64,000 nucleotides of DNA from Tubulanus polymorphus (taxonomy: Eukaryota; Animalia; Nemertea): assembly GCF_964204645.1 (NCBI RefSeq), contig NC_134035.1, positions 3,224,001 through 3,288,000 on the forward strand. Reading direction: 5' to 3'. The translations under genes and the position numbers were made by a program. Under the pieces are notes generated by a model, which was given only the letters and a program-made list of their open reading frames with translations, made no database searches and was not told where the DNA came from. Position 1 is the stretch's first letter; every line of letters starts with the position of its first letter. Of the stretch, positions 9,141 to 48,800 are shown one piece after another.

Positions 9141-12100
9141 GCGTATCTCTTTAACACCCGTATTGCTCGGGTTAGTTTTACTACCAACGGGTGGCGCTGT
9201 ATGTAAATTTCACATAAATCAACGACTTTCGGCTATTAGCGGTACTTAAGTTAAGACCACTTGAAAACATCATAGTCAATTACGGTAGTAGTGAAAATAA
9301 AAAGATACAGTACAAAGATACAGTACGGTGTACAGTTAAGGACATGATTTCATAGCACCCATACTAGAGACATTTTATTCAGACAAGGACTATTAGTTAA
9401 ACATAATCTTCATGATATTTTCAGCAATTAATGATCTGTTATATTAATTAGTAATTCAGTCTTTCGGTGGTTCGAGATAAAATGCCCGCAAAATAAGAAC
9501 CTAACGAACCAGGGCTGACCACAAATTGACCACCAGATAAATTTTCGAAACGACACAATCCAATCATGTTTGGTATCAAATAACTCGTGGCTCGGACCAT
9601 TGTCTATTAACTGACCACTGCATGACCAGTACCATATATAGTAAATTATTTGTTTTGCAAACAATTAAGTTGTTTGGTGTCAAACAACTAGAAATGATGA
9701 GGGCATTAATCTAAAAATTGTTTAACTGACCAATACTTGACCAGTACTGACCAGTTATCAGTGCTAACCATAAGCCCGCATAAGTAATTTATATGTTTAG
9801 TAAAGCCATAAAATCGTGTTTGGGCGTCGAGCGACTAAATATGGCGCGGGCTATGATCTAACAACTATTTAACTGACCAATTTTTTTACCAATACTGACC
9901 TTTAAGTAATTTGTCTATTTTAGAAGCAACACAGTCGTGTTTGGTGTCTAATAATTAGATATTGTGTGGGCTTTCATCTAACAACACTATTCCAACTGAC
10001 CAAATCTTGACCAATACTGACCACATAGCTATATTTATCTGTTTCAGAAACAACTTAGTCGTGTCTGGTATCAAATGATTTCATTTGGCCTGAACGTAAA
10101 TATAACATCTCTTTTACATGTATAAGCTACACAAGTACTCTCTAATTACCGGTTAAATGTTTTTAGAAATGACACGGGGTTTTGCCTGAACCCTTCGTTA
10201 GTACTACTAGCTCTTATATTTAAATTTGTCGCTTGAAAAGTCTTGTCAGATTTTTATAGTAGGTAGCGAGCTAACTTTGGAATTTCGTACTAAAGTCTAT
10301 CCCAGTGGTTATGATCGCGGTGCATAGAACAGTTCATATCATCGCAGATCTGGAACCCTGTGGTTTCTATGTGCTCAACCCTGCAAGTAACTGAGGTCAG
10401 GCAACTACTACATTCAAGAGTGAATGATACTAAAGTTTTCCCATCCTGGTCATTCACTTCTCTTTATTCCTCTAGATTTGGTTTTTTCTTGTATATTCTC
10501 AAAAGTGCTGCCAAATAGCAGTGAAAACGTGTGGACTCCAGTCAGGTCCAGGCTTCTACTTATCAGAAATTATTGAAACATGAAACATGAAGCTAGGTCA
10601 ATAAGCAATTTCTTTTTATGAATGACTTTAAGAAAACTGGAAAAAGAGAAACATCTGTACCGGTATCGTACCGGTACATTTTTTTGCCATTATGAGAATG
10701 CCGGTTTGCTAGCGTATCTCTTTAACACCCGTATTGCTCGGGTTAGTTTTACTACCAACGGGTGGCGCTGTATGTAAATTTCACATAAATCAACGACTTT
10801 CGGCTATTAGCGGTACTTAAGACCACTTGAAAACATCATAGTCAATTACGGTAGTAGTGAAAATAAAAAGATACAGTACAAAGATACAGTACGGTGTACA
10901 GTTAAGGACATGATTCCATAGCACCCATACTAGAGACATTTGATTCAGACAAGGACTATTAGTTAAACATAATCTTCATGACATTTTCAGCAATTAATGA
11001 TCTGTTGAATTAATTAGTAATTCAGTCTTTCGGTGGTTCGAGATAAAATGCCCGCAAAATAAGAACCTAACGAACCAGGGCTGACCACAAATTGCCCAAC
11101 AGATAAATTTTCGAAACGACACAATCCAATCATGTTTGGTATCAAATAACTCGTGGCTCGGACCATGGTCTATTAACTGACCACTGCATGACCAGTACCA
11201 TATATAGTAAATTATTTGTTTTGCAAACAATTAAGTTGATTGGTGTCAAATAACTAGAAATGATGTGGGCATTAATCTAAAAATTGTTTAACTGACCAAT
11301 ACTTGACCAGTACTGACCAGTTATCAGTGCAAACCATAACCCCCCATAAGTAATTTATATGTTTAGTAAAGCCATAAAATCGTGTTTGGGCGTCGAGCGA
11401 CTAAATATGGCGCGGGCTATGATCTAACAACTATTTAACTGACCAATTTTTTTACCAATACTGACTAATACTTTAAGTAATTTGTCTATTTTAGAAGCAA
11501 CACAGTCGTGTTTGGTGTCTAATAATTAGATATTGTGTGGGCTTTCATCTAACAACACTATTCCAACTGACCAAATGTTGACCAATACTGACCACATAGC
11601 TATATTTATCTGTTTCAGAAACAACTTAGTCGTGTCTGGTATCAAATGATTTCATTTGGCCTGAACGTAAATATAACATCTCTTTTACATGTATAAGCTA
11701 CACAAGTACTCTCTAATTACCGGTTAAATGTTTTTAGAAATGACACGGGGTTTTGCCTGAACCCTTCATTAGTACTACTAGCTCTTATATTTAAATTTGT
11801 CGCTTGAAAAGTCTTGTCAGATTTTTATAGTAGGTAGCGAGCTAACTTTGGAATTTCCTACTAAAGTCTATCCCAGTGGTTATGATCGCGGTGCATCAAA
11901 CAGTTCATATCATCGCAGATCTGGAACCCTGTGGTTTCTATGTGCTCAACCCTGCAAGTAACTGAGGTCAGGCAACTACTACATTCAAGAGTGAATAATA
12001 CTAAAGTTTTCCCATCCTGGTCATTCACTTCTCTTTATTCCTCTAGATTTGGTTTTTTCTTGTATATTCTCAAAAGTGCTGCCAAATAGCAGTGAAAACG

Positions 12101-21341: not shown

Positions 21342-22277
21342 ATGAACGCAACGATTTTCAAGAGGTCGTACGTCGACAAATGGATTTTGGCCGCATATGT
21401 ATTGCCGCCTCTAATCCCGGTCGGTGTTGGTTTAAACGCGATGATCATCGTCGTATTTGTCAAACTGAAAACTAAAAATCGCTGCATCTATTTACTGAAG
21501 TGTCTCGCTGTTGTCGATATCATATTTCTGGTGACGAAACTCATTCAGGACCCGGTGCGGTTTTATATTCACTATGCTACGTACGGTGATATGATCATTT
21601 ATTTCGTAGCGCCGCGAATTTCCCCGTACATTTACATATGGCTGACAATGTTGAATAACGGATTTCAAATGTTTCGTAACTATTTAACTGTAATTATTCA
21701 ATGCGAACGATTAGTGACTATCATTTTTCTACTGAAGGTACGATATAGGATAAATTTTCTTATCTTATTCGCGTGTGTCTTTTCTGTGGCTATGTGTTCG
21801 TATTACCCGATCACGATGCGTGTAATCTATCAGCCCACATCGAAGCTCGCTCCTCATTACAAAGCATCATTTGCGCGTGACAGTGTCTTTCTACTAATGA
21901 ACCGATACATCGACCCGATCTTCCGTATTTTCATACCGAATCTATTAGTTTTCGTAGCGAATATAGCTCTTCTAATTGTATTACACGTTAAAACGACGCG
22001 TAGGCAAGATCTGACCGCCACAACTAGCGATCCGAAACCGCAAAAGGGCATGGCAAAAGCCACGAAAATGGTGCTTACAATGAGTATCATTTTCACGATT
22101 TTAGAATTTCCAGGTTTGCTCGGTAAAATCGGTGGACGCTACGTCCTCGGGCGCGGTTTAAACGTATTAACATTCTATCTGGTTACATCGATCATCAATT
22201 CTTGTATAAATCTTATTCTTTATATAATTGTGAACAAGCAATTTAGAGAAAAGTTCGTTCAGTTGTTGAAATGCTGA
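21342..22277 (+). CDS. Intronless rhodopsin-class (class A) GPCR, divergent peptide-receptor/chemoreceptor-like
   Basis: 311-aa ORF with seven hydrophobic segments: TM1 GVGLNAMI, TM2 LAVVD, TM3 CERL (DRY-like), TM5 IFIP, TM6 KATKMVL..LEFP, TM7 NSCINLILY followed by helix 8 NKQFREKF. N-glycosylation sequon NAT at the N-terminus. Confidence 0.9.
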   Translation: MNATIFKRSYVDKWILAAYVLPPLIPVGVGLNAMIIVVFVKLKTKNRCIYLLKCLAVVDIIFLVTKLIQDPVRFYIHYATYGDMIIYFVAPRISPYIYIWLTMLNNGFQMFRNYLTVIIQCERLVTIIFLLKVRYRINFLILFACVFSVAMCSYYPITMRVIYQPTSKLAPHYKASFARDSVFLLMNRYIDPIFRIFIPNLLVFVANIALLIVLHVKTTRRQDLTATTSDPKPQKGMAKATKMVLTMSIIFTILEFPGLLGKIGGRYVLGRGLNVLTFYLVTSIINSCINLILYIIVNKQFREKFVQLLKC

Positions 22278-35200: not shown

Positions 35201-36774
35201 AAATATCAATACTAGCTCTCTAAGGTTTCTGTTGGTGTACATGTCTGTTGGTAACCCGTAGAGAATAGCTGCTCTCTCAACAATGATAAGCAAGGAGTGA
35301 GTAAATCAAAGCGCGTCATGACAGGAGCGTTGAAAAGAAAAGTTACTTTGGCAAATCAGTTTCTCAAATAATTTTAGATTAGCGAATCATTAAGGCTAAT
35401 TCTACATGTCCAAAACCGTCATGACAGCTAGGTTGCTGCTCCTTGCCAAAAGTCGAACGGGAGAGTCGGCATTCTAGGAATGCCGATCTTTTCCATAAAA
35501 GAGGCCCGCAGTCTTGAGAAAGCAGACCTACTAGGGACGCTCGTTAAGATACTTGAGATCTGGGTGGAAATACCAGAATTAAGACGGGTTGCCAACAGTA
35601 GTGTACAATAGGAATTTAGAGTTAGGAATTGGACTGTGTGCTATCTGGAGATATTACTATTATCAAGGTAAATAAAATCTATTTTATCATTATTATATTC
35701 AATCAGAATTTCGGCATTTTAGTTTAATTATTTGGGTTTGTGCACGGACACGTTCTCTCGCCAGGGACCGATCTTTACGTTTTTATATTCAACGATTAAG
35801 GAGAGGATTGTGACCGGTGTATCACTATATTTTACAATGTGTTACATAATTTTACACTATGTTTAGAAACGTTTCTTCGCCATCGTTTCTTCGCGTATTG
35901 ATAACAAGTATTCTTTGTTGATTCGACGTAAGTTACTTTATTCATGTATCATGTATTTGACTGATATTTTCAAATATCTGTATCAATCGTTTTAGATTTT
36001 GTACAGTATAGTTTTCTCCTGACCAACTACTGCATTCTACATCATCTAAGATTCTTTTCCACGGTTTTAGGTAACATAAAAGCTTTTTAATTCCATATGT
36101 GTATTGTACAGAATGTTGTAATTTATTCATGAAATAAGTAATTCATACTTTCACGTTATCATTGACAATGAATTTAATACATTGTTATTTATGATAAGAG
36201 GTAGAATTCATGGCAGTCGAATAGCACCTTACACCTATAATAACAGATAAAATGATAGTTCAAAACATCAACAGCACTTCGAGTACACGTGGACGCTAAG
36301 TCAACTTCAACAATCTTATATCAATTTCCAGTTAAAGCCTGTTCAACCGATATCGATAGCAATGCGATAGCCGCCTGCTCGGTGACCCTTGGCAAATAGA
36401 GTTGATTTGTTTATAAGAAGAAGACGCTTATGTAAGTCGTATAAATCGAACGGACCACGTACACACTACAGGTAAGAACAAAAGTAGAGAGTTACGTATA
36501 TGATGTACATGTATAGCAAACGTACGTTCACTTATTTCTAAAATCAGAAAACAATGTTACATGATTAAAAAAAGATTAGAAAAAGAGACATTACGTATTC
36601 AAAGGGGTGAGACCCCGCTTGCCTCGGATCTCACGGGACCATTAATCTATCTCCGATGTAAGCGAATTCCGGAGTAACCAAGACGATATGTCGCCATCAT
36701 TGCAAAGTCGGAACATTTTAAGATGCTTTTTTTCTGGCCGGGTAACTATGATCGGAGGCAAGCGTGGTCAACAT

Positions 36775-36881
36775 GGACCCAGTTCCACAGTTGAGTTAAA
36801 ATCAGTTCATTTTCTCAGTTAACTGAGTTCTCTGAGTTAACTCAGAGTCCAATCTTAACTCACAACTGTGGAATTGGATCC
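36775..36881. mobile_element. Palindromic MITE (family with TIR ggacccagttccacagttgtgagtt)
   Basis: Inverted termini. Related copies or halves at ~2640-2672, ~4130-4155, 39361-39490, ~49450-49650 and ~52310-52420. Confidence 0.75.
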
Positions 36882-36997
36882 TGAGGTCTGATTGATAATT
36901 TTTCATTAAGTAACCATCTCCTAAATTCAGACTGTATGGCTTACGTATAACTTAGGAGTAATACAATGTATTTTGTCGTTTATGAGTTTATTATCAT

Positions 36998-39900
36998 TTA
37001 TCCTTGCTTTTTCAATATCTCGTCTTGCATTGCTGGAATGATACCCTCCCGGAAAGCAACGTCCAGCAGCTCTTCCGAGTCGGCGATCTTCGGGTATTCG
37101 TGAATAGCCCATTTGAGGTAAACCATGAATTCCTTCCAATCGATTCCGCCATCGCTGTCCATGTCGATCGCTTGCAGGGCTCTCTTCGTGTCGGAGCAGC
37201 GATAGCAGCCGAAATAGGGCGCCATGAATCCGTTATAGAACGAATCGAACTCCAGCATATCATCGCCTTAAAATGTAACAGAAAAAAATATATATAGTAT
37301 TTACACACATAGGATTCGGTTCCTGGGCTAAGTAGGTGGTTTTGGAGTTGCAAATTGTAATTAGCCAAGTTAGAACATTAGCTACGGACCAGGGACCAGT
37401 TGCGTAGTCAAGACTTAAGACCAAAGGTGGTCTTAAATCTTAAGACTGATCTTGAGTTGTTAGATTGGCTATAGAACTAAGTTTGTCTTCAAAGCCCTGT
37501 CTATGGAACCGGACCCTGACGACTAGTTAACTTTGAACTTAAGTCAGGCCCGTACAACTGGGAGCTGTTTCAGGATTAGTGCATATTTACAATAACCTGG
37601 TGTCAAATTAGAAAACGTAAGAATACAGTACATTGAGGGATAACTTGTTTTGATTGGTGTATTATATACACCATTTAGATACTATTGTTTCTACGTTGAT
37701 TCGGCTCATTTTATCTGATAAAATCTACTGCTGTAGCGAAAGAGGTTACTTTTGGAAAATAACAGTTGCAAAGATATTGATTGAAGAACTCTCGTCAGAA
37801 CTTTACCTTGAACGGTATCTTTAAGATCCCACGTATCCCATATTTCACGAATCTCGGCAATAAGTCGTTCAGCATGAAGCGAATTGGTCTCCATTTTAGA
37901 AATAGCTTCACTCATCGCTTCGGTCAAAGAACCTCCCGCTCTATCGTATAGGATAGCTAAACCGACCATGCTTTGGTATTCTTCTTTCCTGAAAACGAAT
38001 CGAAAAAGAACCGACCGATGTATTTGAGTACTGAATTACATTAACGATCACTCTATACCCCAGGCGCGGATCCAGGGTCAAAGGGGGTTCACTTAGGGAA
38101 TGTTGGGCCTATTTCTTAGCTTCACCGCTGTTATTCTAATCAAAACAAAATCGTTGTTCCACATAAAGATCTTCAAGAATGGTAAAACAGCTAATTGCCG
38201 AAACAGGATTTCGATATCTTTCAGTTTTTCAACCAAATATTTGATATTTCTTCGGAGAATGATTCAGTCTGCAATATTTGAGGATGGAAACTATAAGGGA
38301 CCTCGACATTTTTTCGTGTTCTGGACTTCTGGTTCGTGTTGTGTATATACAACGATACCTGTTGTTGCGTAAGTCCTCGAGCATCTTCTCTTTCATTTTC
38401 GTCGTCCGTTCGGTTGTGAAATCAGCGTTTTCGCCGAACAGGTGCACCAGTCGCAGTCTGATTATCTCCGGTGTGGCGACGGTCGTGATGCGCATCGTAT
38501 TCTCCTCGCCGAAAAACTTGGCCATGTCGAAGTCGCCCTTGTCGAGGCTGTACACGAATTCCAAAGCCCTCTTGCCGTAGATAATCTGTCGGCCGTGCGG
38601 TTCCTTTTCGGTGGTGATTTTTGTCACGTTTCTGGCCGCTTGTCGCAAATAGCTACAGTTGTACCTGAAAATGGCGAAGTTTTACTCACGTTTATATGAT
38701 CGAAAGATTATATCATCAAATAACGCGGTAAAATCCTAGAATTCAGAAAAGAAAAAAGGCCCGAAAAGTTTCCTTGAGCTATAGTTAATTTTCATCTTCG
38801 TCTGCGGGTTCACTGATATAAGCATATAGTCGAAACGTTGAAACAAACTACTAGCTCGATGAAACCATTCGGACCCATCTATCTTTCCGATATTGTAGGA
38901 TTTTAGCGTTTTGTCGTTTCAGCTCGGACTCTGAATGTTTCAACAAGATTATCGTATTATAAGTGTATTGGGGACGGGGCATCATTCAACTCAAAGAATC
39001 TATCGAATCTGTTATAATTCGTTCTTTGTCCCTCGACCCAGACGGAGAGGCGTAACAGTGATGTCCCGCTCTGCCGTCGCTATCGTAAACTGACAGAATG
39101 AAATTTTCCCTGGACAGAATTCTCACCTTTTCAGGACTTTCTTATTGCCGAGTCGTATCAAGTTGGTAATTGTAACACACGATGAAGCGGCTCCCATCGA
39201 AGCGCCCTCGCAGCAAACGCTTGCCCATATTCCGTTACAGCCGAAAGCTAGTGCCTATAATATGACCGCAAAAAACACTGTTGAGACCTTGGTTGATGCT
39301 GTGTTCAAAGAGTTTGTAACGGGAAACGATGTTTTATTCATCGACTTGTTTGGTTCTCCAGGACCCAGTTCTACAGTTCTGGGTCCATTTCCACACATCC
39401 GAGTTAAGATTTAACTCCGAGTTAACTCATTGAAAATGAACTGACTTTAACTCAGAGTTAACTCTAACTCACAACTGTGGAACTGGGTCCTGAGTTTTAA
39501 TTCGACCCTTTCATTGAAAATGAAACGATTTCGCTCACAACTGTCGAACTGGAGCCAGAAATCATCAAGTCATTATGCAACCAAAATAGTTTGAAATTAC
39601 GATACTGATCTATATGAGCGAAAAGTTCAAATACCATATCCATGAAATAATGACCCAAGTGTAGAATCCGATTAAGTAGTTCCGGGACAAATCAAAATGA
39701 AGAACCGAATCACTACCGAAGTATGGAATAATGTTCCTACCACCCTTGCACTATTACCCCGTTTACTACACTTGGGCCAAAAAGGATCTTAATTTTTGCC
39801 GAAGAGAAATTCACTCACTTTTAGATTAGTTGCGTCACACAATCCATACTTTTCGTGTGTATGAACTAACAAATGACCCTTCCAATCATTGTTGTCCATA

Positions 39901-42192
39901 ATCTGTCGCAGGAATCTCGACCATATTCCGCACTCTTCCGGTAAGCTCGACCCGGTCGGATCCTCGAAGATGATGCCGAACGGACGAATATCGGCCGGCA
40001 ATTTGCCCAAGAAATCGGTCATCTGGAATATACGCTCTGGCTTGTCTTTCATGCTATCCGGCAGATCGCGGTAGTTGATGAGAACCTGGATTTTAATGAA
40101 AATCATAAGGGGAATCGCATGATGAATGATGCAACATCAATTTCGTATGAAATAGACCGATATATTCTCGGCGATTTTGATAATAAAGCAGTTTAATAAC
40201 AAATAAGATCTTATGAAATGCTATCATGATTGCCACGCGTAAACACGATAAAGGTAAGCGTTTCATAGTTTGATTCGTAGTAGATGAACACATGGAAAAA
40301 ATAAAAAATAAATAAAGAGTTGAAAAGGAATAAAAAGCAAAAACAAAAGGAAGGAAAATGAATAATTAAAAAGACAGATTTATAATCTTGGTGATCCTGT
40401 AATGATCTTATTTCAAAGTTAAATGATCTGTGACAGTTTCGAGATCGCATCTTCAGATGAGCAGTAAAAAATTTTAAAAATTTATCAGTTATTGTCATTT
40501 GGTGAATCTGGTATTTATTTATGTAAATTATTCTGGAAATAAATAAATGAATAAATACACTGTTGATGCGACTTATTAACTGTCAGAAAAAAATAAACTT
40601 TGACATATCGCAATTGCGGGATCATTCGTCATAGGGATCGTAACATTCGAGATGAATTCTGCAGAAACACTAGCGCTAACCTTTGCGTCCTTATGCAAAT
40701 TTTCGTGACACCACACGATCCATTTTTTCATTAAATTTTGCATTTCGGTCATCGGGAATTTGTCGAAATCGTAAACGACGTCGCTCAAATCCACCTCGAG
40801 TATCGCGCCGTGCAAACCGAACTGTTTCATCTTCTTCAAACCGATCGGGACGTTTTCGGTGTTGGGCACCTTCTTTGCCACTTCTACAGTAAAATAAAAA
40901 CAACGAGAAGACCAACTTGAAAGTTTATTGACGATGTGAAAAATATTCTATATGTATTTTGCTTTATTCTGTCGAAAATTAATGATATGATAAAGATCGT
41001 ATAATAAGAAGGATCAATGCTGTTGATTCGAATTTGAATAAATCCACAATTGAATTGATTTGATTTGAATTGACAGGCAACCCAAATAGTGATGACGTAG
41101 TGCCACGTCCAATCACACAATATTCTAATTCATTTTCAAAAATTCATAGAAATTCATTAGATAGAAAATAAATCATGAATAATTCAATAAAAAATAAACG
41201 CCTATTTTCGCTAATGGTAATTACTGTTTTGAAACACCAATTATGATGACGTAGTGCACATCAACTCACACAGCTCCTTATTATAACGCAAAGTAGTTAT
41301 TAATTTATGAAAACATTTTTGAAAGGTTTTTACGGCGTCATAAAAACGCGTTAGGTTACGCTCAGGTTCACATGACCTTGTCACGCATTCGCGTTTCTTT
41401 TTTTAAAGATTTTATCGCCAAGAATATTTCCAACTGGTTCTAATACGAATGGCATTTCACAAACGAATGGCATTTCACAAAAGAACGCGCGCGTTTAACG
41501 CGTTCTTGAACCGACCTATTCAATCATATCATCAAATTAAGGATATCGCGATACAAAACCAGATTGAAAAGCAATAAAGTATTATTACGATATTATGCAT
41601 TATAGAGTTTAGAAGCGCCCTGGAGACATATTCATAAAAACAATTTCGAAAAAAATTGGTTGTTTATTTCCAAAAAAACTGGTTTTTATTGTTTTCATTG
41701 TTAAAAGTGATTTTTGGAGGTTATTCCGAGATTCCTGAACTGTTTCTAAGAATACGTTGATATGTCACCAGTAAATTATACGCGTACGCTTAGGTATACG
41801 TTTTTTCGCTTACTTGTGGTAATTTCTGAGAAGGCGAACATGCCATCCGTGTCTTCACCGTTATCCTTCAGCTGCTGCAGAAACAAGTCGTCGACGCGAG
41901 TCATGTGCGAAAACGAAGCGACCACTCGATGTTTGAAGCCGAGTTTCTTCACTTCGTTGTAGATTTGCCATTTGTTTTCGATCGTGTGTCCGGTCAACGA
42001 GCCGACCGTGCTTTCGCGGATCGAGTTGTCCAACACGAACAAGTCTAAATCCCTCAAAACGTCGTATTTGCGCAGCTTCGCGTCTTTGGCGGCTTCGTAT
42101 TCGCCGACCATCGCCGAGAAATCATCGTTCACCTTCACGTCAGCCATCGCCTTACTATGCTGTTCTATATTGGCCTTGTACTTGCGAAACAT
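36998..42192 (-). CDS. Uncharacterised ~577-aa protein: DRE-TIM metallolyase-like (homocitrate/isopropylmalate synthase, HMGL-like) barrel plus C-terminal EF-hand
   Basis: Seven phase-consistent GT-AG exons: 42192-41814, 40883-40681, 40085-39819, 39254-39127, 38664-38359, 37988-37807 and 37266-36998 (1734 nt). Motifs: LDNSIRES, HLLVHTHEKYG, ALAFGCNGIWASVCCEGASMG, RQIIYGKRA and the EF loop DMDSDGGIDWKE. The gene structure is high confidence; the fold call rests on motif recognition. An acceptor at 42212 means a further upstream exon is possible. Confidence 0.85.
37393..37517. mobile_element. Intronic palindromic MITE (ggaccagttg..cttaagacc family)
   Basis: Inverted termini ggaccagtt / aaccggacc. 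A related copy lies at ~53310-53420. Confidence 0.55.
39361..39490. mobile_element. Intronic palindromic MITE, Harbinger/PIF-like
   Basis: ggacccagttctacagtt ... aactgtggaactgggtcc in a CWG-type context. Confidence 0.75.
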
Positions 42193-43096: not shown

Positions 43097-44975
43097 ATGG
43101 AATCAAGGCTAACATTTTTGCTCGTGGTCGCTTCGCTGTTCGGAGCGCCCGCAGTCAGCGGCCTGCCTCTCGTCACCATCTTCAGCAAAGCGATTCGATA
43201 TTTTGCATCGGGCGACGCCGCCGCAGCTGCACCAGCCGTACACAACGGGCCACCAGCATTCTGCAACGATCTCAGCTGCCCACGATTTCAGATCATCGAC
43301 AAAACGCTAGTACGTATTAAACTACCGGCAGATCAGAATTGCGTTTTGTTGAATTAACCGGCAACCAGTCTAACCAGACTAGCTCCAATAGTGATGACGT
43401 AGTACACATCCGATCCTCAAAGTTAATGGTCAAAAAGACATGAAAATTCATTCAAATTGAAAATAAAAGTCAAGAATAAGATTTGATTACAAAATGAATG
43501 CCAATCACAATTATAATTGTTATTCTGAAACGCTAATATTGATGACGTAGTGCGCATCGACTCACACAGAACCCCTTCAATAACGGATACTCGGTATCAA
43601 TGTATCCAAACCTTATTGTAACCATTTTTACTGCGTCAAAATTTTCAAGAGAAATCTATCAGCACGAATCTGCTTAAAATGAATGAAAAATTATGTTTTC
43701 GTTTCCAAAATAGGATTACGAATTAAGACGTTACGAAGCAGTGCAATGGGTATCGACGAACACGAGCGAGGGATACTCATACACGGTATCAACGACGAGG
43801 TTGTTCCGAAAGTTGTTCAAATACATTAAAGGAGCTAACGCAGAAGGTTGGTTTTCCTAGGCAAGACTGTCTGGAGAAGAACTCCGAACGCAAAATAGCA
43901 AAGTGACGTTTTAGTTGTGAAAATGGTTCATTCAATGATAGAATTCAGTCCAATCTCTTAGTCGAAATGCCAATCACCCTTTTTGTTTCTTCATAGTTGT
44001 CGGGTTTCTTCAGTTCTCGATTTTGATAGACACATTTTTTCTCAAACAAAATTTTTGAAAATAGGGATTATAGAATTTAGTCGAAATGTCACTATTAGAT
44101 TTTCTTGTGATTTTTTCACCTACAACCGAAGAAGAAAATCGAAGATGGAGGAACTTTACCTACTTTGAGAAATTAGGATTTTTACCGAAGGTTTTTTTAC
44201 GCTGCTAACCTTTTCCTCGAATAACGATAAATTTTCTTCTATAGCGCTCCTACAAATTATAGTCAGTGCACGTTGCATAGGTATAGAACAAACAGCTGAT
44301 AAAATAGTAATTTAAAACACATGGGGAATAAATATCAGGTTAAATTTACAGGTGGCTAAATTTCGGTTTAGAAGGTGTATGTAATTACGTTAAGTCAAAG
44401 AGGAATAACACCTATGCATATTGACGTGTGTTCTGTGTCTCATTAAATGATCTGCAGAATTCGGCATTTAATTTCAGAGAAAAAGATCGCCATGACCGTA
44501 CCCGTGATTAATCTTATAAACGAAACCGCCAGCCCCAGACAACTGGAAATGTCGTTCTACCTCCCCGCGGAAAAGCCCCAGCCGTCCGATCCGCGAGTGT
44601 ATCTCACGAACACGCCGAAAATGCTCGTCTATGTTAGGTGAGATCGAAATACCTAGATTAACCTAACGATCAGTAAAAACAGATATATCTATCTGAAATA
44701 CGAACTTTCGTTACTTAACTTCTCGGGTACAACATGTTACCGAAAGGGCCCGAGTATTTTTGAAAACGCTATTATTCGAATTGATCTTACCTTTCAGAGA
44801 ATTTGGGGGATTTACGTTCGGATACCGCCGGTGGGAAATGGAGGCTAAGAAGTTGACAGCGGCTTTGGATTCAGCTGGCATAACCTATCATTCGACGTTC
44901 TTCTACACGGCCAGTTACAACAGTCCTTTCACTTTATTCGGACGCCACAACGAAATATGGGTCATAGCGAAATAG
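43097..44975 (+). CDS. Secreted SOUL-family heme-binding protein (HEBP2-like), ~227 aa
   Basis: Exons 43097-43309, 43714-43846, 44478-44637 and 44798-44975 (684 nt, phases consistent). Signal peptide MESRLTFLLVVASLFGAPAVSG. SOUL motifs PAFCNDLSCPRF, DYELRRY, FRKLFKYIKGAN, KIAMTVPV, MSFYLP, VYVREFGGF and YNSPFTLFGRHNEIW. Confidence 0.95.
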
Positions 44976-45882: not shown

Positions 45883-48800
45883 ATGGATTCTGGACGCAAG
45901 GTTTCGCCTTTCATTATGGTCGAAAAAGACGGCGGTATATACGGCGAAGACTTCGAACTGGACGACGAGGAGAATACTAGTTCATCGTCTCTTCATTCGA
46001 CCATGAAACGAACGTCATCAACTGACGTCATCGTCGAGGACGATAAAATCTACGACCTATCGGAATTAAGAAAAATCGAAACTTCGCAACAACAGCACGA
46101 CCAAAAAGGAGGGAGGGGAAATGTTGTTACCACAGATGCTAAGTCGAGAAGCGTGCCTCGACAGTCTACGTTTTTATCGAGCAGTTCCGGAAGTGAAACG
46201 GACATCCACATCGATATTCAAAAGGAAGATGGCCTCGAAGAATTAGAAGCGTTGAAGTGTCTAGAAATGGCGAGCGTTAAGTTGAGATTTCCGATGGACG
46301 TCATCAAACGGGCGTCCGACATCAAACAGATGGACGAAGCAGTCGAACGCGTGTACGCGCAGGGTTATGCGGTCGGTCGTCAAGACGGTTTATTAGACGC
46401 ATTCGCCGGTCGTTGTGGTGGACGGACGGGCGGCGTTACCCGTTCACAAGAGCGCAGAAAAAAAATTACCAACCTAGCGAATAACAAGTCTATTATGGGT
46501 AGCGACGATCGGGACTCAGATTTCGATGAAGATTGTATTATCGAGCTAAGCGGACCGTCACCAGACGAAAGTTCGACGATTAACTATTTCGACGATATAC
46601 CCGACGAGTTTCACGTCGTGGAAAATCGAAACGGAAAAGGAAGCTTCAACGATAGCTCGGAGAGCGTTCAGTGGACGACGGTAAAACCGTCGACAGTTGT
46701 TATAGAAGAACTGCCGGACGAGAAACTCGGCAAACAACGAGGGTTCGAACCCGTTTATCCGTCGGATGACCTACCCGGCGACGTGGTTAAAACGAAACCC
46801 GACATTCGGGCCGGTAGTCCACTGGCTAACCATCTCGTAGATCTGTTTACCCCGGAAGGTTATAAGGGCCCGCGCGCTAAACGCGACGACAAAAGTCCGC
46901 CGAAGAAATCGACACCGCAAGTTGTAATGCCGTCGGAAATACCACCGCAGACCAGCAGTAACCGCGACGACGGTCCATCCCGCGAGGAAGCCATCGAGCA
47001 TCAGAGTAAATGCGACGAGAATACACGCGTTAACAAAATTGAAAATAAAGAAGAGAGTTATGTTGGGTCTGTCAGGAGAACAGATGCATTGCCTTCGGGA
47101 ATGAACGCTTTAGGTGAGTTATGTGCGAACGCGTATTTAGCCTTACCGCAGATTCACCAGAACCCCGGTGGGGAAGGGGCAGTAAATCATGGCTTCTGTC
47201 TCCGACAGTGCCGAATGCAAAGAGAATTGGCGTTAGTAGCAAAGGGCTTTTGGGCAGTTTACACTTTGGGAACTTAATTTCTGTGGTAGACAGCGAAACC
47301 TGGGCTCTCCACTCACTAGTGCAAACATTGAAATCGTGACGCATTCTTTTTCTAAGGAACTGGAGATGAAGGACAATTCCTGCACCGAACAATAGAAGAT
47401 CAGGCGTGCATCATTAAAACGTTGAAGGAAGATAGGGATGAACTCGAGGTAGGATGTCTGACAGTCGTGTCTTTGTCGAAACGGGATGAATAAGACAGTT
47501 TTTTTTCAATTCACATCTTGCATGGTACACTGTACTTTATCGTAGGCCTATGTTAGCGAAGGTTTAATGGACCTGCGGCAAACATCTTTGTCTGAGGTCT
47601 TCAATCTAATGACAGGTCTAATCTCATCGAAGGTCTCATCTAATCTAGAGGTCTAATGGCAAAATTTGTCATATCATTTCATTCTAATTTATCACAATAT
47701 TATCATCGAAGTAGGTCCTCTTGATATGCGCAATATTTGTCTGGAATAGTTTTTCTTTTGAAAATCGAAATGAAGATTTTTTTGTCAATTTTGTCGATTC
47801 TAGGAATACATAGAGACGAGAGAGAGGGAATGGTCGGACACCAGTGACCGTTTGAATCGAGAGATTCTTACTCTGAGAAACCACCTTACCAAGTACACCC
47901 AGGACAGGGTCGCTTCCGGTAATTGATGATGACCGTGCGTCATTTGCAAATCTGACGACAGAAGTAAAAACCCATGATATAATGAGAAAAAAACTAAATA
48001 AGAATTCGACGATTCGGCCCAATTCTATGGGCCATTTTCAAGAAATGTTAATTGAAAAACTGGGTATTTACTTCAATATTTTGTCCATGGAAACCAACTG
48101 ACTACACTAGTTACGACTCCTTTAAGACCTCAATTTACTCTTCCTTATGATATCTATATCATAATAGTCTCTTGTTCATTTTCCAAATCAAACCACTACT
48201 TCTTAAATTAAATTACTCCCAATAGTGATGAATACTTCTCCAAAACGTGAATACCAGGTAGTCAGATCTGCACTTTATGGTGGCCACATTAAAACGAAAA
48301 AACATGGTGCTCAATCTCTCCAATTTTCATTACATTTTTCTACTTTTCCTTTCACCGCAATGTTTTGGCGAAAACCTATTTTCAACGAAAACGCCCACGT
48401 TTCAGTGAAAAGCTGGGTTTAACGATATGTTGAGTGTCATATTCTAGTTTTAATGTGGTCCGAATCAGCCACCATGGCATTTAAAAATTCTACTTCTAAA
48501 AGAAATGCGTCGTAATTTCCTACATAACGTTTTTGAATCAGGTCGACAGGTGAACTCCCGTCTGCTGGCTTCGATGGTGAAAGCGAAACAAGACAACGAT
48601 AAAGCTTACGCAATCGCGGTTGAACTACGAACCAAGGTTAAAAACAAGCGTTAACAGTTGGAAAGATTCAACAAAACAAGTGTTAACAGTTGCTAAGATT
48701 TACCAAAACAAGTGTTAACAGTTGCTAAGATTTACCAAAACAAGTGTTAACAGTTGCTAAGATTTACCAAAACAAGTGTTAACAGTTGCTAAGATTTACC

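Follow-up and report, generated by a model that had tools for sequence, protein, structure and literature searches.

To our knowledge, animals are held to have only two members of the DRE-TIM superfamily, 3-hydroxy-3-methylglutaryl-coenzyme A (HMG-CoA) lyase and the carboxyltransferase domain of pyruvate carboxylase. Here we describe a third animal lineage, represented by a seven-exon gene on the minus strand (36998..42192) of a 64,000-nucleotide stretch of the nemertean Tubulanus polymorphus (NC_134035.1, positions 3,224,001 to 3,288,000; this whole stretch is referred to as the window). The lineage is found in sponges, stony and soft corals, and Tubulanus, often as tandem copies, and has no described function; its architecture recalls the synthases of the leucine and lysine pathways, enzymes absent from animals, but the active site is rebuilt and a calcium-sensing tail is predicted. 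In methylthioalkylmalate (MAM) synthase, the metal is held by Asp90, His288 and His290, and the 2-oxo acid by Arg89 and Thr257; enolisation of acetyl-CoA is served by Gln93, Glu227, His388 and Tyr399, and CoA is contacted by four Arg and a Lys (PMC11532901). Ala in place of the Gln, Glu, Thr or His, each alone, abolishes the activity of this enzyme (PMC11532901). The 2-isopropylmalate synthase (IPMS) is regulated via the mobility of its accessory domains, which are restricted by the leucine-binding domain (PMC9860122).

The statements on structure rest on a homologue, P0236 (563 amino acids (aa), ~56% identical over the seven exons), mapped back to the window exon by exon. The model of P0236 (predicted local distance difference test, pLDDT, 93) is a (beta/alpha)8 barrel of the HMGL-like type, with Z scores of 30-33 to citramalate, homocitrate, isopropylmalate and methylthioalkylmalate synthases, 26 to HMG-CoA lyase, 24 to aldolases, 20 to carboxylases, and 15 or less to other barrels. 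In a wide structure search, the top 16 matches were all DRE-TIM proteins (Z 20-33), and the next fold had a Z of 15. The structural alignment with 4OV4, 6KTQ and 6E1J reaches model residues 430-442, i.e., it runs through accessory subdomains I/II. A first-pass annotation, made from the window sequence without database searches, had proposed both the DRE-TIM fold and a synthase-type segment after the barrel, and both are borne out by the homologue model. At the sequence level, family members score 18-27 bits with the Pfam HMGL-like profile (cut-off 29), and P0043 scores 13-18 bits with NCBIfam profiles that have cut-offs of 229-950. Judged from the model, the fold, the helix and the metal site mark the window protein as a DRE-TIM homologue, though the conserved barrel Glu is not kept; the protein lies outside each known DRE-TIM subgroup tested and is in effect a new subgroup, in line with the separate clade that had been suggested for it.

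The Claisen-type synthases compared here (citramalate synthase of L. interrogans, 3BLE; homocitrate synthases of T. thermophilus, 2ZTJ, and S. acidocaldarius, 6KTQ; 2-isopropylmalate synthase; and MAM synthase) share with the family the barrel and accessory subdomains, the D-x-x-x-R-(D/E) helix, the HxH motif and a regulatory position at the C-terminus, and homocitrate synthase also shares the R-E pair. Unlike these synthases, to which its identity is 11-15%, the family has replaced the Gln, the strand-5 Glu, the Thr, the GER loop, the subdomain-I His and Tyr, the strand-3 Arg and the KHSGR motif, and it carries an EF-hand pair with a CxxC motif in place of the leucine-binding or RAM domain. 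The animal HMG-CoA lyase (2CW6) is similar in its barrel with Arg, acidic ligand and HxH; however, it lacks the accessory subdomains and the EF-hand and keeps the Gln, the strand-2 Glu and the Thr, and the window protein is not its orthologue.

Profile comparisons with LeuA and MhpE from one sequence each were too weak and gave way to a profile alignment to seven LeuA/NifV/CimA-type proteins over the barrel and subdomains (probability 96-98%, E 5e-9), which is concordant with alignments to solved structures. The Arg and the Glu, His and His of the metal site are present in 109-110 of 110 homologues, consistent with the Arg-Glu helix and HxH site read by the first-pass annotation. The helix D55-N-S-I-R59-E60 (42013..42030, minus strand, as are all features of this gene) aligns without gaps to DTTLRDGEQ and contains the conserved Arg and the acidic metal ligand, R59-E60 being kept in 109/110; the predicted metal-binding pair H269-x-H271 (39855..39863) is on strand 7 and is found in 110/110.

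Most other positions of the known catalytic set have changed. The Gln at Arg+4 (MAM Gln93) is Val in 108/110 homologues (V63 in the window protein), and the Gln two places after Arg+4 is Ala in a subset and Ser in the window copy. The strand-2 Glu is replaced by Val/Ile, the strand-3 Arg by Glu (E123, 41824..41826, at the end of the strand; a charge reversal relative to the Arg of LeuA/NifV/CimA), the strand-5 Glu (MAM Glu227) by Arg in 109/110, and the strand-6 Thr (MAM Thr257) by Pro in 101/110. The subdomain-I His (MAM His388) is replaced by Gly, and there is Phe at about the position of the Tyr (MAM Tyr399); no conserved His or Tyr is present in columns 337-369, and the window protein has no His there. 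The GERxGN loop reads EGAAxGH in the family and EGASMGA in the window copy, and the KHSGR/RSGR motif reads TLAS; in the synthases, these two motifs and the strand-3 Arg presumably contact CoA. Thus, the barrel Glu of D-R-E is kept neither on strand 2 nor on strand 5, and other invariant Glu residues are found on strands 3, 4 and 6. The new invariant residues (window numbering) are H69 (41986..41988; a family-specific His, 110/110), E156, N198, D201, E235, W293 and E299. The replacing residues, two charge reversals among them, hardly vary between sponges and diatoms, and this speaks for a functional site. Two earlier suggestions did not survive this comparison: the match to a GER segment, since GER is lost, and an acetyl-CoA chemistry of the IPMS/homocitrate synthase kind, since the Gln, Glu, Thr, His and Tyr that it needs are all lost.

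We tentatively propose that the family is a new DRE-TIM subgroup that acts on a 2-oxo acid by carbon-carbon chemistry of the metal-enolate type, without CoA and with Ca2+ as the gate; we regard this reading of the sequences and models as quite possible, if short of probable. The protein would have evolved from a 2-oxo-acid Claisen synthase scaffold into a C-C lyase or ligase, with a retro-aldol, aldol or beta-decarboxylation reaction. In this mechanism, E60, H269 and H271, possibly together with E235, would bind a divalent metal, and R59 would stabilise the enolate of the 2-oxo acid, as in all DRE-TIM enzymes. No acetyl-CoA enolate would be formed and no CoA thioester would take part, because the residues that bind and deprotonate acetyl-CoA are gone. 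Binding of the carboxylate would pass from the lost Thr to R200, H69 may serve as acid/base, and the acidic/aromatic rim (E123, E156, D201, E235, E299 and W293) would suit a substrate whose tail is cationic, either an amine or a sulfonium. The reaction probably differs from those of the leucine and lysine pathway synthases.

Over strands 6-8, the best alignments, although weak (E 0.07-0.09), are with oxaloacetate decarboxylase and hydroxy-oxovalerate aldolase, CoA-free enzymes with loops that also lack GER. The 4-hydroxy-2-oxovalerate aldolase (DmpG/MhpE; 1NVM, 8IH7) resembles the family in the DRE-TIM barrel and the strand-8 loop without GER, and its substrate is not CoA; it uses a His at Arg+4 as base and has a dehydrogenase-pairing C-terminal domain and no EF-hand, whereas the window family has Val at this position and an EF-hand. 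Oxaloacetate decarboxylase alpha and the carboxyltransferase of pyruvate carboxylase (2NX9, 2QF7) share the barrel and, weakly, a non-Thr motif on strand 6 (KDMAG versus EE/DPTG) and G-H after strand 8. In contrast to this carboxylase subgroup (PC/OAD/5S), the family has Glu in 110/110 where these enzymes have Lys, and a different post-barrel domain; no biotin-carrier or biotin-carboxylase part was found in any family member scanned.

Several observations weigh against the proposed CoA-independent, Ca2+-gated chemistry. The reaction and the gating are predicted from sequence and modelled structure, with residues mapped by profile alignment at 11-15% identity. A bacterial copy (L001) is without several of the new acidic residues and without the strand-5 Arg, and the neighbourhoods of bacterial copies (L001, L011, L015) are mutually discordant and point to no pathway. 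In addition, the accessory subdomains, to which acetyl-CoA binds in the synthases, are still present and contain conserved basic residues (R358, R384 and an R-K pair). This last feature would also be expected for an acyl-CoA-dependent synthase or lyase with a different base and a different CoA grip, which makes or cleaves an alkylmalate-type product for a specialised metabolite; the nearest folds, all of them Claisen synthases, and the automatic naming of some members in databases as isopropylmalate, homocitrate or citramalate synthase point the same way. We consider such an enzyme somewhat unlikely, given the replacement of five residues that serve catalysis or substrate binding and of three basic sites, the NCBIfam scores far below the cut-offs, and the absence of dehydratase and dehydrogenase partner genes beside every bacterial copy examined.

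The C-terminal module occupies the place of the IPMS leucine-binding domain. Its second EF-hand has a canonical loop, D523...E534 (37130..37165; Pfam and homologue alignment), which is canonical in the window copy and in 94/101 homologues; the Pfam match has E=1e-4, below the curated cut-off, and sequence profiles align the C-terminus with calmodulin-type proteins at E of about 1e-6. The first EF-hand is degenerate: position 12 has no Glu and is Ser in 86/101 homologues (S497 in the window protein). The first-pass annotation had described a canonical loop, an irregular partner and their placement at the IPMS regulatory domain, all in agreement with these data. Between the two EF-hands is C509-x-x-C512 (37196..37207), present in 95/101 homologues; like the charge reversals and the Ala/Asn subfamily of this copy, this motif had escaped the first-pass annotation. 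The C-terminal 126 residues, folded alone, form an EF-hand pair flanked by helices (pLDDT 93), and the matches of this domain are nearly all EF-hand proteins, though only at Z 5-7. Under the proposed mechanism, Ca2+ bound in the second EF-hand would shift the accessory subdomains over the barrel, as leucine does in IPMS, so that flux would follow the Ca2+ signal, and the CxxC would add redox or Zn2+ sensitivity. If true, such direct control of a metabolic enzyme by Ca2+ would indicate that marine invertebrates and algae have a so far undescribed pathway coupled to signalling.

The locus is a genuine and ancient gene, and it is transcribed. The joined exons comprise 1734 nucleotides (nt), i.e., 577 codons without an internal stop followed by the stop codon, with phases consistent in the reading-frame check; all six introns are GT..AG and have lengths of 370-930 nt, and all motifs quoted in the first-pass annotation are found in the translated model. 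Exon 1 (41814..42192) encodes aa 1-126, i.e., the N-terminal helix, barrel strands 1-3 and the active-site helix; exon 2 (40681..40883) encodes strand 4 with the near-invariant E156; and exon 3 (39819..40085) encodes strands 5-7 with N198-x-R200-D201 (Arg for the catalytic Glu) and E235-D-P237-x-G (Pro for Thr). Strand 8 and its loop, with W293, E299 and A305 and without GER, are encoded by exon 4 (39127..39254), and the last barrel helix with the synthase-type subdomains I/II, without the catalytic His/Tyr, by exon 5 (38359..38664). Exon 6 (37807..37988) covers the end of subdomain II, the linker, the entering helix and the start of EF-hand 1; exon 7 (36998..37266) contains the remainder of EF-hand 1, the CxxC, EF-hand 2, the closing helices and the stop codon. 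The GC content is 49% in the coding sequence (63% at third codon positions) versus 30-40% in the introns. Full-length homologues match all seven exons in order at ~56% identity, in support of the seven-exon model of ~577 aa proposed earlier. No second copy of the gene was found within the window.

Splicing was examined in contigs of public runs. In run X4, for which the library type is not on record, introns 3, 4 and 6 are spliced out, with exons 3-4-5 and exons 6-7 joined with 0 mismatches and with borders 1-3 nt or less from the model, and one contig piece terminates exactly at 40883, the edge of exon 2. Splicing of introns 1, 2 and 5 was not seen in the X4 contigs, and contigs of the remaining three runs are unspliced across introns. 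In other individuals (those three runs), none of 11 indels and 4 of the 40 listed substitutions, 2 of them silent, are within the coding sequence (about p=0.01 for each). Introns 1, 3 and 5 have identical codon positions and phases in L078, L080, L089, L091, L092 and L098, as far as each covers, and the position and phase of the exon 1 donor are common to L078, L089, L091, L092 and L098. A pseudogene or chance open reading frames (ORFs) are ruled out by the splicing, the indel pattern and the ordered homology.

Database searches used single window exons or returned homologues as queries. Exon 1 alone matches 403 clusters at 50% identity, and a full-length member matches 724 clusters at 90%; the named members are labelled "uncharacterized" or "EF-hand domain-containing" protein. 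Members are found in sponges (Halichondria, Dysidea, Geodia), in stony and soft corals (Montipora, Oculina, Desmophyllum, Stylophora, Dendronephthya), and among algae and protists (the diatom Skeletonema and the labyrinthulid Hondaea); tandem copies are common. No vertebrate, insect or nematode names are among the matches listed, and no family members were found on viral contigs or plasmids. With single exons as queries against Pfam and PDB sequences, the EF-hand was the sole domain recognised, and zinc-finger matches of exon 3 were dismissed as chance similarity to H-T-H-E-K. As the first-pass annotation had suspected, no characterised orthologue came to light: no characterised member was found in databases, and the literature search, with most subscription papers outside its reach, yielded no publication that deals with the family or with its locus tags.

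Three ESM Atlas clusters are probably the same family as the window gene (TM 0.70-0.87), namely two that are named "EF-hand domain-containing protein", have 111 and 96 members and are mostly from Cnidaria, and a third ("putative Homocitrate synthase", 435 aa) with 65 members, 95% of them bacterial; the three have automatic names only and no Pfam family of their own, and no paper on them was found. The active site breaks the rules by which such enzymes are annotated, so that the name "isopropylmalate/homocitrate synthase", given automatically to some members, is probably an error and could mislead claims of leucine or lysine synthesis in corals or sponges.

Several members are fused to other domains: P0054 and P0272 carry DM9 repeats, P0084 a thioredoxin-like domain (with its own CxxC), P0068 an alpha/beta-hydrolase domain and P0077 a SnoaL-like domain; P0084 and P0068 lack the linker CxxC. 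Intron patterns also differ. The Halichondria gene, on a chromosome-scale record, is intronless, L003 (10001-16947) has two intronless inverted copies that are 92% alike, and the animal-like loci L002-L005 and L056-L058 have no introns, one near residue 228, or a 103/261/414 set; retroposition, loss and independent gains are all candidates for these differences.

In a quick tree, separate placement of four window exons put each of them in the same clade (SH-aLRT 98), which holds the intron-sharing loci and three transcripts and is apart from the named sponge and coral sequences. The window copy agrees with 101 of 109 near-invariant family columns and departs at 8, including Q->S and H->A. The latter is A305, after strand 8, where most of the family has His; Ala/Asn is also found in L029, L032, L042, L078, L092 and one L098 copy, and being common to several loci, this state is a subfamily marker and not decay. 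The two intron-bearing tandem copies of L098 (3041-13538) have His in one and Asn in the other at this loop position. These departures, the loss of the known catalytic set and the domain fusions could be taken to mean that the protein has little or no catalytic activity and instead binds a metabolite, as a sensor or scaffold in which signals from Ca2+, redox state and a 2-oxo acid are combined; the subfamily of the worm, with Ala/Asn for His, may then be the most degenerate one. This appears unlikely to us: the new invariant polar residues lie at strand ends, stand-alone EF-less bacterial copies sit amid transport and catabolic genes, and the change to Ala/Asn is common to the whole clade, Asn being the residue of active synthases at this position.

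Bacterial copies are rare but real. A 442-aa protein without the EF-hand is encoded among bacterial genes in marine metagenomes, a divergent EF-less copy is present in an Acetobacteraceae genome bin, and two further copies include the EF region: one is in a Verrucomicrobiales bin, and the other is full length and comes from a different bin. In the EF-less bacterial copies P0061 and L001, the barrel and subdomains stand alone; such intronless and EF-less members make the family directly testable. The Acetobacteraceae protein as query matched only two near-identical relatives. The loci found in the metagenome scan are almost all eukaryote-like, so there is no operon consensus. L001 is surrounded by ABC transporters, an amidohydrolase and an M20 peptidase-family gene, and L015 has a TRAP protein nearby. 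In L011-L014, a single lineage, the EF-less copy is beside a methanethiol-oxidase-type cluster; in L011 (3303-9792), it is 312 bp behind SCO1 / SBP56 / SCO1-MauG / AhpC and has a GC content of 52% versus 59% in the flanks. The SCO1-SBP56-MauG arrangement is that of a methanethiol oxidase type cluster (PMC5739008). Together with the extent of the active-site rewiring and the mostly marine range, this context would fit a metalloenzyme with chemistry foreign to DRE-TIM proteins, e.g., a hydrolase or an Fe(II) two-His-one-carboxylate oxygenase/oxidative decarboxylase, with a cationic 2-hydroxy or 2-oxo acid as substrate, for which a sulfonium acid of dimethylsulfoniopropionate metabolism is one candidate. 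Such chemistry is distinctly unlikely in our view, because the context is confined to one lineage and the others differ, non-marine-looking and Acetobacteraceae copies exist, and the invariant enolate Arg fits ordinary DRE-TIM chemistry.

In the tree, the two bacterial proteins with the EF region are placed within sponge and coral sequences, which suggests animal-to-bacterium transfer; yet bacterial monophyly was not rejected when the four bacterial proteins were forced together (approximately unbiased (AU) test, p=0.39), so that no direction of transfer between bacteria and eukaryotes is claimed. Bacterial contamination or recent transfer into Tubulanus is ruled out by the shared introns, the intron-bearing clade, and the sponge and coral relatives; the first-pass annotation had raised the possibility of an old horizontal transfer. 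A broader scenario, in which a fifth DRE-TIM subgroup, an ancient animal/protist enzyme with a reaction outside the known substrate range of the superfamily and a direct Ca2+ and thiol redox switch, expanded in sponges and corals as a signal-activated step in defence or osmolyte/organosulfur metabolism and was passed with its EF-hand into some bacteria, is conceivable but doubtful. In the Verrucomicrobiales locus L015, a TGA (11558-11560) is found at the conserved Trp of EF-hand 2, and the C-terminus continues in frame beyond it; the truncated protein is also on record in JGI/NCBI and Logan contigs.

Elsewhere in the window, a SOUL heme-binding family gene (43097-44972, plus strand; Pfam E 3e-10 and 6e-12) with a signal-peptide-like start is head to head with the DRE-TIM/EF-hand gene, 905 bp from the start codon of the latter. 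Short high-copy repeats with inverted arms, resembling miniature inverted-repeat transposable elements, are found in introns 3 and 6 and just downstream of the gene (39359-39502, about 37390-37530, and 36760-36893), with a summed contig depth of 10^4-10^5. Two plus-strand ORFs have no Pfam match: an acidic, low-complexity ORF of 464 aa (45883-47277), and a single-exon ORF of 311 aa (21342-22277; no match at E 0.05) that reads like a seven-helix peptide receptor.

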